Source: Hormiphora californensis (taxonomy: Eukaryota > Animalia > Ctenophora). Taken from it: 64,000 nucleotides of DNA. This document shows, one piece after another, positions 81 through 33,858 of this stretch (positions within the stretch are counted from its first letter, which is position 1; the number at the start of each line of letters is the position of its first letter). The stretch covers positions 3,968,001 through 4,032,000 of the forward strand of contig CM035354.1 in NCBI GenBank assembly GCA_020137815.1, read 5' to 3'. The notes under the pieces were generated by a model that did no database searches, was not told the DNA's origin, and saw only the letters and a list, made by a program, of their open reading frames with translations. The position numbers and the translations under genes are program-made.

Positions 81-740
81 CTTATTTTGGACCACTTTAT
101 GTTGCCGTTGGATGGTGATGGGAACTCCTAGAGCACGTATCTTCTCTTTAGAACTATAACTTTGTATATTTTCATAATCCTGTGGAAATGGGGGTTAATA
201 ATAACTTTGAGTAATTGACATAATATACCCAAATCAAACAGTGTGATAAGTTTCACCGATCACCCAACATAGTCAACAGTCAACACCCAACTAACAACTA
301 TCACCCAAGTACCAACACCCAACTATCACCTGTTGAACGCAGTGTACAAGATGGGATATGTTGTCGAGGCGGCTATGGTGTGACTCCAACAGATTCGAAA
401 GGCTCCCAGATAGGGAGGTGAGCTGATGTGTCACATTTATCAGTGATTGCACCACATACCCCTTACTTTGATCAAACACGGCCTGTAGAAATAATTATGG
501 CTTGATATTCACTACAAAAACTATGTTTTCTCATGCTAGAATGACTGTTTTTGTACTGTTACACACAACATAATTAGGGTATGGGGTAGGGTAGGATGGA
601 ATGCTCACCTGTTGATCTGCTGACGAGAGGAAGCTTTGCTCACAGAACAGTGCAAGTTGCTCGAGGTTTATGGAGCTCTCCTGTAGTTCCCGACGAGTGT
701 TCAGGACCTCGTCATTAAACAACGCTTCGTCATACAACAT
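81..740 (-). CDS. ABI: Abl-interactor (Abi/ABIL) family protein, 5' part; continues beyond window start
   Basis: Exons 740-609, 482-330 and 179-81 with GT-AG ends give MLYDEALFNDEVLNTRRELQESSINLEQLALFCEQSFLSSADQQ-AVFDQSKGYVVQSLINVTHQLTSLSGSLSNLLE..., matching the Abi N-terminal WAVE-binding helices (human [26 protein letters not shown]...KAYTTQSLASVAYQI). Confidence 0.75.
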
Positions 741-1602: not shown

Positions 1603-2164
1603 GTTACTGGCACGACTTTCCGATAAATATTCATGTAGCGCGCGATATTTTGTGTTGTCGCGCCGCCAGTTTTCATATCGAGTTTATTTCGCATTTTTTA
1701 AATTTTGTCGGTTTGTCGTTTTAGACTTTCAAAGTTTGCCCGTTGCCGTCTATTCTGATGAAGAGTGGTTTTATTTTAGTGTATGCCAAACTGCACAGAA
1801 AGCAGCAAATCTTTTGATCCCACCCATGGTAAAGTCCATTTTTTTAAACTGTTCACCCGTCTGCAGTCACCGGTCACCCCCATTTTGTTGGCGGATTTTG
1901 TTTTGGATTTGCTGGCATCTTATCACTTCTGCTATATTTATTTCAAAAATCGGAATATTAAGTGTAACTTGATTTGATTTGATGATCGCTAAAGAATCTG
2001 ATGGCTATGGCCTATGCAGTAAACGTGCTTTTTAAATTTTAGGACTGTGCAGGGAAATTAACCAAATGAGCGATCTCGCTGTTTGTTCTGGCTTTTGCTC
2101 AGTTCCACCAAAATATTAAATCACTGTATTATTCATCAGTCATCAAATTTAGCTTAAAGGACTG

Positions 2165-4018
2165 ATGGAAGGCAAATTTATCACTCTATTTGAGTTCCTG
2201 CTAACCCGAGGAATTCAAGAAGGATGTGAAGAGTTCTGCAAAATTCTCCTGCGATTTCGTTCCCAGCCTCGCTCACCGGAGGATATTTCTAAAACATCAC
2301 ATTCCATTGAATCATCTGCATACAATCACTATCTGTTGAAGCATCTTACTTGCAGTGATATTCAACGTCTTCTCAAAGACTATGACGTGTTAGTAAAACT
2401 ACCAAATTCCAATCTGCTCCGGTTCGACCAAGAAAAAGTTTCAGTTCCTCAGAAGCTTCCCTTTTTGCTGCCATTCAGTGCACTAAAATCTAACAAATGG
2501 GCAAACAAAAGGTGTCCCCTGAGTGATCGGATGGAAAAGTTTAGCAGACTTGGAGGCGAGTCACAGGCTGGTTATCTGAGTGATGTTGTCTTCGAAGGGA
2601 ATCTGGATCATGAGAAATATGACAAATTATATGTTATCAGAGCCCTGACAATGATCTATTCACGAGCCAAGAAACTCAATTTTGAATCCCTTCTACCTTC
2701 TCCACCGACCTCAATAAACTCTGTGGTCGATTGTGAGATCTCAAGCAATCAGATCGGACACTTTATATCCCAGGTTATCATACTTCTTCTACCAAAATCA
2801 GTCATTCCAGTTCCATTTCGACGGAAGTTAATTAAAGGACTAAATGGGTTAATTGCTGGGAAACGAAAACAAGATTTCCTCCACCAATTACCATCTCCCT
2901 CGAATTCTTGTTCCCTCTCCTCCCTTCCTCCCCTGGCACTAACGGCCTGTCTTCACACCATCTGTGCAGAGATCATTGTCCCACTGATATCTTCCCGTGT
3001 TTGTATAATAGGGAAATCAAAATCCACCCGATTCTTCCACAGAGATCCCTACACACGTCATATAGATGTGAAGTATCATGATTACATAGAGCTGGTTCGT
3101 CCGAAGCCTCCAAAATTCGAAGTTTACGGAGTATATCCGGTAGTTTTGAGGCCCAAAAGAGGGATATCTGGTGGTCTGAGGATGATTTCACAACTAAACA
3201 AAAAGATTGGAGATAATGGGATACCCATGAATGTGCTGTTGACACCACTACACGCTATTTTGAAATCTGTACACTCTGGGATGCGAGACCGTTGGAACAT
3301 TTCACCAATCAAGGGTCGGATAGACCTGACAACGAAGATAGCAAACTTCACAACCCAAATGAAGGGATGTCCCTTGTATTACTGTATTGTGGACGCTGAA
3401 TCGTGCTATGATAACATGAATCTATCCCTTCTCTCCGGCGAAGTTCTGGAAAATCTGCACATGAGTGACTGGTATCACGTGATTAAGGTCCGGGTCCAAG
3501 AACACCACTCAGATAGAACTCGGTTAGAGAGCTTTGCCATTCCCTCTACAACATCCACCGCAGTGTCCCTTGAAACTGCCCTGTCCCATCTACCCAAACA
3601 TCTATCTCACTGTACCGTTTCATTTGTCAAGCAAAGTTCATTTTCGGCAAAATATGCCAAAGATTGGCTCCGGAAATTCCTACTCCGGTCGGCTGCTATG
3701 TTTCGAGGTCAGTTATTCATTCGAAAAAAGGGAATTCCCCAAGGTGCGACCATCTCTAAAATCCTTGCTGACCTGTATTTTGGGTACCTGTTCCGCCATG
3801 TTAACCTCGGGGAGCGGCCGAGTCTCTTTCTCTCTGCTACAGATGACATTCTCCTTGTTTCCACTGAACACACTGTGGTGGATGTGTTTTACAAAGACTG
3901 CAAAGAAGGGAGGTTTGAGTTCGTGGTAAAGAAAGAGAAAACACACTCGTATGAGGAGAGAAGTGGTCATATCATCAAGTTTTATGGCCTTGAGTTTGAT
4001 TTGTCCACTAATAAATAA
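2165..4018 (+). CDS. TERT: Telomerase reverse transcriptase (TERT)-like protein, divergent, intronless, lacking the C-terminal thumb
   Basis: QFP-like SNQIGHFISQVIILLLP; degenerate T region IIVPLISS...TRFFHR; motifs 1/2 RPK..GGLRMI; motif A YYCIVDAESCYDNM; long insertion between A and B'; motif B' KKGIPQGATISKILADLYF; motif C TDDILLVS; motif D FVVKKEKT; motif E FYGLEFD; then stop. Confidence 0.85.
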   Translation: MEGKFITLFEFLLTRGIQEGCEEFCKILLRFRSQPRSPEDISKTSHSIESSAYNHYLLKHLTCSDIQRLLKDYDVLVKLPNSNLLRFDQEKVSVPQKLPFLLPFSALKSNKWANKRCPLSDRMEKFSRLGGESQAGYLSDVVFEGNLDHEKYDKLYVIRALTMIYSRAKKLNFESLLPSPPTSINSVVDCEISSNQIGHFISQVIILLLPKSVIPVPFRRKLIKGLNGLIAGKRKQDFLHQLPSPSNSCSLSSLPPLALTACLHTICAEIIVPLISSRVCIIGKSKSTRFFHRDPYTRHIDVKYHDYIELVRPKPPKFEVYGVYPVVLRPKRGISGGLRMISQLNKKIGDNGIPMNVLLTPLHAILKSVHSGMRDRWNISPIKGRIDLTTKIANFTTQMKGCPLYYCIVDAESCYDNMNLSLLSGEVLENLHMSDWYHVIKVRVQEHHSDRTRLESFAIPSTTSTAVSLETALSHLPKHLSHCTVSFVKQSSFSAKYAKDWLRKFLLRSAAMFRGQLFIRKKGIPQGATISKILADLYFGYLFRHVNLGERPSLFLSATDDILLVSTEHTVVDVFYKDCKEGRFEFVVKKEKTHSYEERSGHIIKFYGLEFDLSTNK

Positions 4019-4085
4019 TCCGATTTGTTTTTTTAACATTTTTTATTGTTTTGTAATAATCTAACTGATATTTTAATATTTTTAG
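4010..4085 (+). promoter_or_regulatory. Intercistronic signals: AATAAA, U-rich tract, branch point and unpaired splice acceptor
   Basis: AATAAA 4010-4015 overlaps the last TERT codons; U-rich tract 4024-4053; CTAAC 4061-4065; TTTTTAG ends at 4085, 81 nt before the Raf ATG; no convincing upstream donor. Confidence 0.55.
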
Positions 4086-4166
4086 TATTAAATTCAAGAG
4101 TGCTCAGCTTCCGTTTCTATCGAACTTTGTTTAACCTTTCCTCCCTTGATAGCGGCAGGAAGAATA

Positions 4167-7100
4167 ATGGACAACACTGTAAAAGACAACACTGTTAAAG
4201 ATATTAAGCAGATTCAGGAGATAAAGAGAATAGAGGAGAAGAGTCTGCAAAAGCTGGAGCGACAGTTTGGGGGACTTGAAAATCCACCATCCATCTACCT
4301 AGAGGTGAGTAGATAATGAATTATGTATTTCATTACAACCGAGAGAGAAGAAGAGTGAGAGATCAGGAAATTAAATGATTTGGAATCCTTGATTGTTAAG
4401 AATCTAAAATGAGTGAGTAGCGTCATTCTATCCTTAATTCTAGCTCTATCTCGAATGCCTAAAAAATAATACTTCGTCTCTCTATCCACTAATTCAGTAA
4501 CTACGCCCACGTACAGCAGCAGTAGCCTACAAGAAAATCAATTTCAAATTTTAGTAACCACGTACAAAAAAGTATGGTACCTCAATGTATAACATACCTA
4601 ATACTCTCTATCGCTATTATTTTCCTTCACTTTTCTTCTTTTTTACACTTTCTTTAAAATCTACTCAATCCAATAGAGATGGCACAGTGAGGAATTTAGA
4701 GACGGAATAAAAGAGAGATGAATGGATATCAATAGGAGAGATAGAGAGAGAGAAATAGAGAGAGTCTGGGAGAAAGAGCGAGAAGGAGAAAGAGAAAGAG
4801 ATAGAATGAAAGCGAGTGAGAGGGAGAAAGAGAGAGAGAATGAAAGATAGAAGGAAATCAAATTCTTGTAATATGCATCCGTCTTTTCTCATTAATTTGA
4901 AGGCATGGAAAAATGCCTGTATTTTACAACAGACCATGTTTACCACACACACTAAAAAAACCTTGACTATTGCTCTGAATACCTTCTACGACAAAAGAGC
5001 GTGGGTAACCAGAAAAAAATCTTGTCTGATCGTTCCCTTTTTAATAACTAGTAATTCAATTTAACTTGACTAAATCTTCAAAACTCTGTATCGTATTGAC
5101 GGTCCTTGTCTCTTCATTTGTATTGAAACAATTGTAAACTGAACTAACTTGACTAAATCTACAACACTCTGTATCATGAATTGTATCACAATAGAGTTTA
5201 TAATAGAGGTCAGAGGGGTTATTAAAGGAGCACTATAACTGCAGCAGCCCCTGATAGAAAGGTGATATAAAATGAAAGCATATTATTATAATAACTGTTA
5301 GTTATGAATAACATCACCTATTCTAATTCAGTGCCCACGTACTGTAGCTCTATCTCTCAGTCCCTATCTTTCTCTCCCTATCTCTCATTCTCTCTCATTC
5401 TCTCCATCTCTCTACCTATCTCCCATCTTCTCTCTCCATCTCCCTCTTTCTCTCTTCTATCTCTCTATCTCACTCCTCTCTCACAGGAGAAGGAAGAGAT
5501 GCAGCGGAAGATTGGAAATCTCCAGGAAAAGATTATGGAGATGAGGCCACCGGATAAGACCATGTCCGCACTCAGTGGGAAGCATATCCGCGTTCAATTC
5601 CCAGAGACCCATACGCTGGTAAATGACGGAAGGCGCCGTGACATATCCCTTAGATTGGAGTATCGGACGGAGCGCGGGCGCGCGCCCCCGACCTGTGCTT
5701 CTCTCTTGACCCGATTTGTCCCCGATTCTGCTCCGGTCTCGGGCGACTCTCAGTAACACTAAGTTCCCTCTGTGGTGGCTCTAGATCAAATTCGAGTACC
5801 CTTTCCTCCCGTATCATTCCTTCCCCATACTACTAGGTCAAAGTTAGGAGTGGAGTTACCTTGGACGCCGCACTGAGTAACAAACTGCGGAACAGGAATC
5901 TTAGTAGCAATAGATGTAACGCCTACGATACACTCACAAGGTAAAGAGATGTATGTGTGTACGTGTCGTCGTGTCGTGGTTGTCTCGCAGTGATAATTGA
6001 TGATATCCCAATATGAACTATTCAGAGAGCTGTATCGGACAGACCATGCTGCGACAATGACAATGCTGTAATGACTGACAACTGACAAGGATGACTCAAT
6101 GACTGACAATGCTGACAACGTGAGTGACAACTTTCTCTCCTAAAAGTTCCAATTTTCACTAATTCCCATATGTTTCAGGACCCAGATAGATTGGGATCAG
6201 TATCTAGATCAGATAGACGCCGATCAGATATCAATATTTCTGATCGATCAAGATGGCCCTCCTGTCACCACCCCTCCTCCTATTCCCACCACACATCCTC
6301 TAGAAAAGAAAACTTTCATCAAGCCATCCTACTGTTCATGTTGCTCCAAAATCATGTTCAACGGCTACAGGTAGTATTTCATATCCATGATATCACAAAT
6401 CCCTGCTAGTTTTGATCCAAGAATTAATTTTCAGGATACCACAAATCCTTGCTAGTTTTGATTTCACTTCAGGTGCACGGTTTGCAATGAGCGGTATCAT
6501 GAAAAGTGTGTGAAAAACGCTCCTCTCTCCTGTAACGTGAATAACACTGCCTTTGATGAACACGACCCAGAGGAGGACCCCTTTACCAGGTTCGTTTGTA
6601 ACGGTTTTAGGGCGATCAAAGTATTTCTTCCTTGGACAACCCAAAACACCAATAGTGGTCTTGCCTAAACATGTCTTGAATCTTGATAGCTCCGATTGTT
6701 CCTTTAAATCATTCCAACCTAATATATCTCCCTCTCAGGAATACGGATGGAACCCCAGTCCACACGCCCATCTACCCCTCGGACGATAACTTCATCCCCC
6801 GAACCCGGAGCATCTCTGAACCGAATGTCACCTACAACGTCAACAAGTTTGGCAGCTTGCCAAAGCGGGCGGGTAGCGTTAAACCACCGCCCAGCACCGT
6901 GGTGTTAAGAAGGCCCCCAGAGACAGAACCTGAAGCTACTCCCAGTACCAGTGCAGTGACCACACCAAGTACACCCCGGCATATTGGAGTTTCTACTCCA
7001 ACACCTCGGAAACCAAGGGTCGCAGCCTCTGATGATTGGGAGATAGATCCCAACGATTGTAAGATTTATAAGGATATCATTGGATCCGGATCATTCGGGA

Positions 7101-8576
7101 CAGTTTTCAAGGGTTACTGGTTCGGAGTGGTAGCCGTCAAAAAACTCAATGTTACGTATCCGACACCCGCCCAGTTACAAGCATTTAAAAATGAAGTCGC
7201 TATCCTGCGGAAGACACGGCATCGTAACATCCTGTTATTCATGGGATGTATATCAGATCCTTTTGCGATTGTGACGCAATGGTGCGATGGTTCCACGCTC
7301 TACACTCGGCTGTATGTTGAGGACCATAAGTTCGAGATATCCCAGATGGTGGAAATAGCCAGGCAAACTGCCCAGGGGATGGATTACCTACACGCTAGGA
7401 ACATCATACACAGAGACCTCAAATCAAACAACATTTTCCTGTCGGAAGAGATCACGGTTAAAATCGGGGATTTCGGCCTGGCTACGGTTAAAAGCCGGTG
7501 GTCGAGTACAGAGCAGGTTATGATGGAACCCACTGGTTCCGTCCTCTGGATGGCACCTGAGCTGCTCAGATCTGAGACACCTTACTCAATTTACACTGAT
7601 GTCTATGCTTTTGGTATTGTCCTATATGAACTCAACACCAACTGTTTGCCTTATAATCACGTGCAAACGAAGGAGGAAATTATATTTCGGGTGGGTATGG
7701 GAATCTTGATTCCAGATGTCAAGAAAGTCAGGAGAGACTGTCCAAGGGATCTGAAGAGTCTTATGTTGGAGTGTTATAAGAGTAAACCTGCGAAGGAGCG
7801 ACCCACTTTCAAACAGGTAATATAGGAGTGTTGTGTGTGTATGTAATACTCATACATTGTTCCCTCTCTTTTGCACCACTTGTGCAGATGTGTATAATTT
7901 CTGTTTAGTTTGGTGCGTGAGTTAAATTATTACCATACATGTGTTTCAGATAATTAAGGGGATAGAAAAGGTGAAAGCCAACCTGCCGAGTATCACAAGA
8001 AGCAAATCAGAACCGAGTCTGTGCAGGTACGTGATAGTTCCAAAACCCACAGACCACAGTCTGACACCCAGCTTGCTGCTTGGGTGACCCACAACATACA
8101 CACACATACCTTTCACCACAAACGAACCAGAAAGTGCCCCTTGACTCACGAATTTATCATTTGATGTTCAAAGGTTTTCTACCCCTCACTTCACCCCTCG
8201 AACTTACCTCACCCCCTCAGTCCTCACTCACACTCTCACTCACACCTGCAGCGGCGACTGTCTCTCAGTTGAGTTGTTTGTACGAGGGTACAATCTAGCG
8301 ACACCTCATCACCACCACTCTACTTGCACCAATATATGGTATTTGTACAGTAGTGTTCACGTTGGGCTTTGTCTAGAAATAAGTGGCAACTTTTTCTGGG
8401 TAAAGCCCAAAGTTTGTAAAGATCCCACATGAACACCCTGTATTAGTAGACACGTGATCACTTTTGGACAAACCATGGCGTTTTGTTAAACCTTCTCCCT
8501 CTATTTCAGATCGAAGAATCTATCATCGTCCCCTCCGACGATTGATACAAGTCCACTGAATATAGGAGAGGCCTGA
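4167..8576 (+). CDS. BRAF: B-Raf-like serine/threonine kinase
   Basis: Exons ~4167-4304 (BRS motif [13 protein letters not shown]), 5487-5618 and 5837-5940 (Ras-binding domain), 6179-6370 and 6473-6589 (C1 zinc finger), 6740-7816 ([41 protein letters not shown]), ~7949-8026 (RSKSEPSL) and ~8510-8576; splice phases consistent. Confidence 0.95.
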
Positions 8577-32334: not shown

Positions 32335-33858
32335 CTTTCTCTTCTCTTCCCTTCCCTTCCCTTCTCTTCCCTTCTCTTCCCTTCCCTTCCCTTCTCTTCC
32401 CTTCCCTTCCCTTCCCTTCCCTTCCCTTCCCTTCCCTTCCCTTCCCTTCCCTTCCCTTCCCTTCCCTTCCCTTCCCTTCCCTTCCCTTCCCTTCCCTTCC
32501 CTTCCCTTCCCTTCCCTTCCCTTCCCTTCCCTTCCCTTCCCTTCCCTTCCCTTCCCTTCCCTTCCCTTCCCTTCCTTCCCTTCCCTTCCCTTCCCTTCCC
32601 TTCCCTTCCCTTCCCTTCCCTTCCCTTCCCTTCCCTTCCCTTCCCTTCCCTTCCCTTCCCTTCCCTTCCCTTCCCTTCCCTTCCCTTCCCTTCCCTTCCC
32701 TTCCCTTCCCTTCCCTTCCCTTCCCTTCCCTTCCCTTCCCTTCCCTTCCCTTCCCTTCCCTTCCCTTCCCTTCCCTTCCCTTCCCTTCCCTTCCCTTCCC
32801 TTCCCTTCCCTTCCCTTCCCTTCCCTTCCCTTCCCTTCCCTTCCCTTCCCTTCCCTTCCCTTCCCTTCCCTTCCCTTCCCTTCCCTTCCCTTCCCTTCCC
32901 TTCCCTTCCCTTCCCTTCCCTTCCCTTCCCTTCCCTTCCCTTCCCTTCCCTTCCCTTCCCTTCCCTTCCCTTCCCTTCCCTTCCCTTCCCTTCCCTTCCC
33001 TTCCCTTCCCTTCCCTTCCCTTCCCTTCCCTTCCCTTCCCTTCCCTTCCCTTCCCTTCCCTTCCCTTCCCTTCCCTTCCCTTCCCTTCCCTTCCCTTCCC
33101 TTCCCTTCCCTTCCCTTCCCTTCCCTTCCCTTCCCTTCCCTTCCCTTCCCTTCCCTTCCCTTCCCTTCCCTTCCCTTCCCTTCCCTTCCCTTCCCTTCCC
33201 TTCCCTTCCCTTCCCTTCCCTTCCCTTCCCTTCCCTTCCCTTCCCTTCCCTTCCCTTCCCTTCCCTTCCCTTCCCTTCCCTTCCCTTCCCTTCCCTTCCC
33301 TTCCCTTCCCTTCCCTTCCCTTCCCTTCCCTTCCCTTCCCTTCCCTTCCCTTCCCTTCCCTTCCCTTCCCTTCCCTTCCCTTCCCTTCCCTTCCCTTCCC
33401 TTCCCTTCCCTTCCCTTCCCTTCCCTTCCCTTCCCTTCCCTTCCCTTCCCTTCCCTTCCCTTCCCTTCCCTTCCCTTCCCTTCCCTTCCCTTCCCTTCCC
33501 TTCCCTTCCCTTCCCTTCCCTTCCCTTCCCTTCCCTTCCCTTCCCTTCCCTTCCTTCCCTTCCCTTCCCTTCCCTTCCCTTCCCTTCCCTTCCCTTCCCT
33601 TCCCTTCCCTTCCCTTCCCTTCCCTTCCCTTCCCTTCCCTTCCCTTCCCTTCCCTTCCCTTCCCTTCCCTTCCCTTCCCTTCCCTTCCCTTCCCTTCCCT
33701 TCCCTTCCCTTCCCTTCCCTTCCCTTCCCTTCCCTTCCCTTCCCTTCCCTTCCCTTCCCTTCCCTTCCCTTCCCTTCCCTTCCCTTCCCTTCCCTTCCCT
33801 TCCCTTCCCTTCCCCTCCCTTCTCTTCCCCTCCCTTCTCTTCCCCTCCCTTCCTCCCT
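32335..33858. repeat. (CTTCC)n pentanucleotide tract, ~1.5 kb
   Basis: Direct reading; nearly perfect, with two single-base slips. Confidence 0.98.

Follow-up and report, generated by a model that had tools for sequence, protein, structure and literature searches.

A probably genuine, compact telomerase reverse transcriptase ending just past motif E in the ctenophore Hormiphora californensis

Closer reading of a 64,000-nt stretch of the Hormiphora californensis genome (C5:3,968,001-4,032,000; hereafter the window) reveals, at 2165-4018 on the forward strand, an intact, uninterrupted open reading frame (ORF) of 617 codons in a single exon. This ORF most probably encodes a genuine compact telomerase reverse transcriptase (TERT), the sole TERT of a pleurobrachiid-type ctenophore, consisting of an RNA-binding domain (TRBD) and a reverse transcriptase (RT) domain without a TEN domain or the C-terminal extension (CTE) that forms the thumb. 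The protein is a member of the already known compact CTE-less TERTs, since such proteins have been described by Lai et al. 2017 (BMC Evol Biol 17:107) and Meier et al. 2006 (PLoS Genet 2:e18). What is new here is that the ctenophore proteins do have motif E, that the stop right after it is kept across deep orthologues, that the assembly (110.7 Mb in 45 contigs) holds no other TERT, and that the T motif has been rewritten further in the pleurobrachiid lineage.

The assignment to TERT draws on sequence profiles and on a structural model. On the window protein itself Pfam reports RVT_1 only (E 1e-8), and a phmmer search of the PDB matches TERTs alone, weakly (E 8e-7). A profile of six orthologues, introduced below, matches human TERT (hTERT) at E 2.9e-27 over residues 450-903, that is from QFP/T through motif D, and also TRBD-only crystal structures at about 1e-3. 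Against a profile of 14 canonical TERTs, hhalign returns a probability of 100% and E 6e-40, pairing ctenophore columns 172-662 (the profile end) with canonical columns 335-894 of 1088. An AlphaFold model built from a 78-sequence alignment has a predicted local distance difference test score (pLDDT) of 81 and a predicted template modelling score (pTM) of 0.75; a single-sequence model (pLDDT 36.5) was set aside, and the alignment-based one was used for all structural results. In a Foldseek search with this model TERTs take the first 18 places (5e-20 to 5e-10), followed by LINE-1 ORF2p at 1e-6. VIA-align superposes model residues 93-617 on hTERT 322-941 (Z 20.3, 498 residues, 3.5 A), places the model on Tetrahymena TERT 220-887 as well, and fits its TRBD to the isolated TRBDs 5c9h (Z 14.6), 2r4g (Z 13.9) and 4o26 (Z 12.7). 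Profile, hhalign and model thus agree with an initial annotation of the window that had proposed a reduced TERT with an intact catalytic core.

The same annotation had described a single-exon ORF with all RT motifs in order and, between motifs A and B', the insertion typical of TERTs, and this description holds. An N-terminal extension (residues 1-92, 2165-2440) is modelled with low confidence and is followed by the TRBD (residues 93-310, 2441-3094), which superposes on hTERT from residue 322 as well as on the isolated TRBD structures. The T motif, IVPLISSRVCIIGKSKSTRFFHRDPY, lies at 2975-3064 (residues 271-300), directly N-terminal to motif 1, as in TERTs. The RT domain (residues 311-617), made up of fingers, palm and an insertion in fingers domain (IFD) of TERT type, opens with motifs 1 and 2 (VVLRPKRG..GLRMISQLNK, 3128-3202). 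Motif A (LYYCIVDAESCYDNM, 3374-3418) carries the catalytic D410, and the codon position given for it at the outset, 3392-3394, is exact, as is that of the aspartate pair D560/D561 (3842-3847) in motif C (SLFLSATDDILLVS, 3821-3862): by alignment these residues correspond to hTERT D712 and D868/D869. Between motifs A and B' stands the IFD, about 92 aa long (residues 419-510, 3419-3694), which is modelled at pLDDT >90, aligns to hTERT ~720-830 and, in the alignment-based model, keeps the beta-rich middle part. Motif B' (KKGIPQGATISKILADLYF, 3713-3784), recognised in the alignments, includes KKGIPQGA. Motif D (VVKKEKTHS) spans 3920-3949 and the motif E, or primer-grip, hairpin (IIKFYGLEFD, with KFYGLEF as its core) 3971-4000; the latter aligns to WCGLL of canonical TERTs.

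Orthologues of the window protein were found at two depths. An initial search for homologous proteins gave only P0001, the Pleurobrachia bachei protein EP00116 P002813, which is its nearest relative (94% identity, ORF intact). An exhaustive search of representatives then returned 65 relatives, including canonical TERTs (e.g. Toxocara, Candida) and four deeper groups of full-length orthologues from ENA and Logan assemblies, which share 24-33% identity with the window protein: P0002 (672 aa), P0003 (666 aa), P0004 (655 aa) and P0005 (525 aa); several of their contigs, at 2.4-2.8 kb for a 2.0-kb ORF, are of transcript size. The window protein, P0002 and P0003 have in common an N-terminal start FxTLFEFLL. 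Ten residues are invariant in all six orthologues, namely K331 and R339 (motifs 1 and 2), D410, Y415, Q526, G527, D560, D561, K592 (motif D) and G608 (motif E). The unusual ATDD reading of motif C, remarked on initially, proves to be shared: five of the six have SATDD, and P0005 retains the DD pair in a varied context. In a FastTree phylogeny of the TERT matches together with the genome's own RTs, the six proteins are a single clade with support 100, nested among the TERTs, and the multi-copy RVT_1 elements of the genome fall outside on a branch of 1.47. No weight is put on the clade's position beside a long-branch yeast TERT, which is probably artefactual.

How, then, does the protein end? 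Some 194 canonical CTE columns are without counterpart in the ctenophore profile by hhalign, and the structural alignments stop at hTERT 941 and Tribolium 400, short of the CTE. After FYGLEF there are six residues, DLSTNK, and then the stop codon TAA (4016-4018), so that the protein closes five to six residues past the motif E hairpin. The figure of five codons given in the initial annotation is right if motif E ends at FYGLEFD, leaving the tail LSTNK (4001-4018 with the stop), and becomes six when counted from FYGLEF. An AATAAA signal (4010-4015) lies over the final two codons, and a spacer of 148 bp (4019-4166) with stops in all three frames and a second polyA-type signal (ATTAAA at 4087) separates the stop from the next ATG at 4167. 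Both the AATAAA and this distance were correctly noted before, as was the consequence that a contiguous CTE cannot fit. The GT dinucleotides in the final 90 nt are all either poor donors or would remove motif E, so to judge from the sequence splicing to a thumb exon is unlikely, and the ORF as a whole would appear to be unspliced. At its other end an in-frame TAG (2150-2152, forward strand) precedes the ATG by five codons; its ...tttag context could be a candidate splice or trans-splice acceptor.

The orthologues end in the same way. The P. bachei protein, from an independent assembly of another species, ends ...DLSTN; P0002-P0005 stop 3-10 residues past their GL(x)(I/F) of motif E, with residues there that resemble canonical D-T-x-T-L; and the RVT_1 match in the orthologues reaches profile position 204-205 of 205, at most 10 residues from the C-terminus. 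Because P. bachei and the four deeper groups all end just past motif E, the truncation is a trait of the lineage and is unlikely to be an assembly error, which the initial annotation had named as a possible cause of the stop; and as it is common to orthologues at such low identity it is old and maintained. Were an intron instead to begin immediately past motif E, five independent lineages would each need a stop to turn up by chance within 10 codons, which is improbable, by a rough estimate a matter of a few percent.

The genome offers no other candidate for the telomerase gene. The ORF is single-copy, and when queried with a canonical 1131-aa TERT (P0007) and a CTE-bearing one (P0009) the genome yields this locus alone (E 5e-14 and 7e-11), the next matches, at E >=0.26, being near-identical multi-copy RVT_1 elements and one chance-level ORF; P0004 as a query likewise finds the same locus and no other. 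The search for a second full-length TERT with these canonical queries was therefore negative across the 45 contigs. Telomere repeats of the usual type are present: a 30-nt TTAGGG pattern has 618 genome matches vs 0 for the control, and a CCCTAA-oriented array stands at the start of contig C2 (positions 6-593), in the orientation expected of a telomere. A further perfect TTAGGG array is interstitial, some 112 kb into contig C3 (G000:C3:112610-112669), and runs opposite to the orientation of a left-end telomere.

A number of observations weigh against a genuine telomerase in a ctenophore lineage, and the most direct concern the T motif (2975-3064). At the expected position, confirmed by the orthologue alignment and by hhalign, the window protein has the diverged sequence IVPLISSRVCIIGKSKSTRFFHRDPYTRHI, which reads SRVCIIGKSKSTRFFHRDPY (SRVCIIGK...FFHRDPY), and the FY..TE and YRK..W residues that other orthologues retain are gone. 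P0004 has SSFYILSRDGSPVFYRKPVW at this site (SSFYILS...VFYRKPVWSKI), and P0002 and P0003 retain F(Y/H)...(Y/F)(F/Y)xKPLW; since these three keep the hallmark residues, only the window protein and its P. bachei orthologue show the strong rewriting. The initial description of the T motif as rewritten is thus upheld, and the failure of Pfam Telomerase_RBD (PF12009) to match the window protein fits it. Family searches succeed in part: RVT_1 is found in the window protein, and Telomerase_RBD passes its cut-off in P0002, P0003 and P0004 (best E 5.8e-13), not in the window protein. Judging by these sequences, RNA binding through the diverged motif may be altered or relaxed. These two pleurobrachiid proteins moreover sit on a long branch (1.24 substitutions per site), and P0002-P0005 are linked to Ctenophora by nothing other than a by-eye likeness of P0003 to a Mnemiopsis segment covering the CP region. 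Three further points are methodological. The structural model shares its TERT-containing alignment with the sequence evidence and is not fully independent of it; the orthologue proteins may derive from ORF callers that end at the first stop whatever the splicing; and one small sequencing run with the same species label matches the window only at 5485-5545, with zero matches over TERT.

The initial annotation presented the protein as something of a singularity, and this was overstated, since Mnemiopsis (PMC5405514) and Caenorhabditis TRT-1 (PMC1361356) provide published cases of the same architecture. Lai et al. describe the Mnemiopsis leidyi TERT, ML03265a, as intronless and without GQ and CTE, and judge it 'incomplete', 'not extending beyond motif D' (PMC5405514). 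The resemblance to the window protein is close: both are from Ctenophora, intronless, and without GQ/TEN or CTE, and it is the CP-region segment in the supplement of that paper that resembles P0003 by eye. Unlike the Mnemiopsis record, however, the window protein has motif E, followed by a stop at a position kept across six orthologues, and its pleurobrachiid T motif is far more diverged than that of other orthologues. Our literature search found no later paper on ctenophore TERT structure. CTE loss is also noted for Caenorhabditis and for ant TERT models, while other nematodes keep the CTE (PMC5405514), so the Caenorhabditis loss is independent of that in ctenophores.

Caenorhabditis provides the functional precedent. 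C. elegans TRT-1 is genetically proven to be the catalytic subunit of telomerase and is needed for telomere maintenance; it has 540 aa, fewer than 30 of them after motif E, an unusual T motif and tightly flanking genes, and its SL2 trans-splice and polyA sites have been mapped (PMC1361356). Like TRT-1, the 617-aa window protein is compact, is truncated at both termini, lacks the conserved residues of the T motif and has close neighbouring genes on both sides; its own short N-terminus, atypical T motif and fewer than ~30 residues after motif E are those of a compact CTE-less TERT. The tail of 5-6 aa is shorter than that of TRT-1, and whereas TRT-1 has genetic proof the window TERT is known from sequence alone. 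As accepted TERTs of Caenorhabditis and Mnemiopsis also lack it, the CTE is typical of TERT and not obligatory.

Two proteins of known structure bracket the architecture. Tribolium castaneum TERT (3du5, 6usr) is likewise naturally without TEN, and model residues 94-617 superpose on its residues 1-400 (Z 16.6-16.8); in contrast to the window protein, with no CTE and a long IFD of ~92 aa, it has a ring-closing CTE of ~200 aa and a short IFD. The best structural match overall is a Candida tropicalis TERT construct, 6zd2 (Z 22.4, 446 residues, 3.3 A), which demonstrates that TRBD and RT can fold stably together in the absence of a thumb, although this construct is an engineered cut from a TERT that naturally has both CTE and TEN.

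All telomerase structures solved so far show the CTE touching the RNA-DNA duplex and completing the ring, and the beta-rich middle part of the IFD partners TEN in Tetrahymena and human TERT. One could accordingly suppose that the gene described here encodes a partial enzyme, the thumb and perhaps TEN being supplied by a separate gene or joined by cis- or trans-splicing, and the retention of an IFD with its beta-rich middle part is in keeping with this. We regard it as improbable. The TERT_C family search of the genome gave two chance-level matches (E ~1), and with TERT_C, TEN_TERT (PF11474) and two full-length TERTs as queries the best E for a thumb or TEN anywhere in the 110.7 Mb is ~1; a separately encoded thumb, as the initial annotation had entertained, has thus left no sign. 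Little weight attaches to these genome negatives, because CTE and TEN are fast-evolving and poorly conserved in sequence (PMC5405514), and because the TEN_TERT and TRBD Pfam searches, which found nothing here, were equally silent in control genomes. Nearer the gene, neither hhalign nor VIA-align yields any TEN alignment for the 92 low-confidence residues ahead of the TRBD, a stretch not long enough to hold a TEN domain, in agreement with the initial statement that no clear GQ/TEN core is visible, and the 1,424-bp stretch between the start codons of TERT and the upstream Abl-interactor (Abi) gene contains no TEN-like ORF. Such an absence has parallels, TEN being missing also from Tribolium and many protostome TERTs (PMC5405514). 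Against a split or spliced thumb stand, in addition, the common end of six orthologues 3-10 residues past motif E, the lack of a plausible donor near that end, the 148-bp spacer with its stops in all frames, and the fact that C. elegans TRT-1 functions in vivo without a CTE.

A second alternative, a shade less probable still, is that a TERT-derived RT no longer makes telomere repeats, having acquired relaxed or new RNA specificity, with chromosome ends kept by recombination or by retroelements. The loss of the T-motif hallmarks, the failure of the Pfam TRBD model to recognise the protein, the long branch of the lineage, and the absence of thumb and TEN could all be read in this way. Yet perfect TTAGGG arrays, one of them at a contig end in telomeric orientation, need a templated polymerase, and this is the sole TERT-like gene in the genome; the repurposed TERT paralog put forward in the initial annotation is unsupported for the same reason, there being no other TERT to maintain the TTAGGG ends. 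All catalytic and nucleotide-binding residues, moreover, are invariant over orthologues of 24-33% identity, a second species has kept an intact ORF with 94% identity, and the TRBD fold is confidently modelled, with the T-motif stretch itself at pLDDT 81-92.

Least credible by a wide measure is a Penelope-like or other retroelement RT, or a decaying retro-copy: the ORF lacks introns although the genome is rich in them, RVT_1 is all that Pfam recognises, and Penelope-like elements, some copies of which are found at chromosome ends, are reported as sister to TERT and nearest to it among RT lineages (PMC8557442), yet those RTs are multi-copy, without TRBD and T motif and often equipped with a GIY-YIG endonuclease, whereas the window gene is single-copy, has the TRBD fold and an IFD, shows no endonuclease domain (Pfam finding nothing beyond RVT_1), and groups with TERTs apart from the genome's own elements, and intronless TERTs are in any case already reported for Mnemiopsis and most protists (PMC5405514). 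The initial annotation had made a grouping with multi-copy Penelope-like elements its counter-case; copy number and fold tell against it, and the RT phylogeny, which covers TERTs and the genome's own RVT_1 elements, does so in part.

If the locus does encode the telomerase of this animal, how might so reduced an enzyme work? TRBD and diverged T motif would pair with the telomerase RNA, and the intact active site would copy a CCCUAA-type template, and so produce the TTAGGG arrays found at contig ends. Lacking a thumb, the TRBD-RT body could not close a ring, so that the enzyme would work as an open body, and the duplex would either be held more weakly, with the thumb's grip dispensed with at the price of low processivity, or be held by the RNA or by another subunit, for which the long IFD is a possible docking surface. 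Caenorhabditis TRT-1 must presumably work likewise. A more elaborate version is that an open TRBD-RT telomerase has served ctenophores since early in the phylum, with the role of the thumb fulfilled in trans by a protein subunit or by a structural element of an unusual telomerase RNA, the IFD docking it, and the T motif of Pleurobrachiidae marking co-evolution with the RNA; we offer this as a speculation that is a good deal more likely to be wrong than right.

Given these ends, the Mnemiopsis TERT judged 'incomplete' is most likely the expression of a genuine trait that ctenophores have in common, that of ending right after motif E. Ctenophore C-termini are among the shortest of any TERT, and they occur in a genome with canonical TTAGGG telomeres. 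In all telomerases of solved structure the CTE is regarded as indispensable for binding the duplex, for processivity and for closing the ring, which makes natural CTE-less TERTs useful minimal systems, and ctenophores provide a second lineage, independent of Caenorhabditis, for asking what replaces the thumb and which RNA partners are involved.

The neighbours of the gene are close on both sides. Upstream, 531-740 on the reverse strand encodes the N-terminus of Abi (ABI2 residues 6-48, E 4.5e-4 in a PDB sequence search; Pfam found nothing on the short flanking ORFs), and the first Abi coding exons (291-740, reverse strand) are head-to-head with TERT across the 1,424 bp already mentioned, which suggests a bidirectional promoter region common to both genes. 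Downstream, a short exon at 4167-4310 on the forward strand, followed by a GT donor, begins 148 bp past the TERT stop, and a B-Raf-type kinase exon lies at 6683-7825 on the same strand (E 1.7e-108). The initial annotation had taken the ATG at 4167 for the Raf start; a B-Raf-like gene is indeed present downstream, and that the exon at 4167 starts it is plausible. The tight spacing of TERT and the B-Raf-like gene is reminiscent of C. elegans trt-1, which sits in an operon. The one sequencing run labelled with this species yields a 948-nt contig that matches a 61-nt Raf exon (5485-5545, 4 mismatches) and diverges on either side of it, much as a spliced mRNA from a related strain or species would. 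An Rfam scan of the window returned zero known RNA families.

Elsewhere in the window, at 32337-33853, lies a (TTCCC) array of about 304 copies with 98% matches, directly followed, up to 34642, by about 72 copies of the 11-mer CTCCCTAATTT in a higher-order unit of 154 bp; the 11-mer holds a CCCTAA telomere core, though the site is interstitial. The multi-copy retroelement that served as outgroup is represented by loci on contigs C11, C3, C1 and C6 (G000 loci L005-L010) with ORFs of ~830-990 aa and an RVT_1 domain (E 7e-34), and its near-identical copies, on terminal branches of 0.002-0.008, suggest recent activity.

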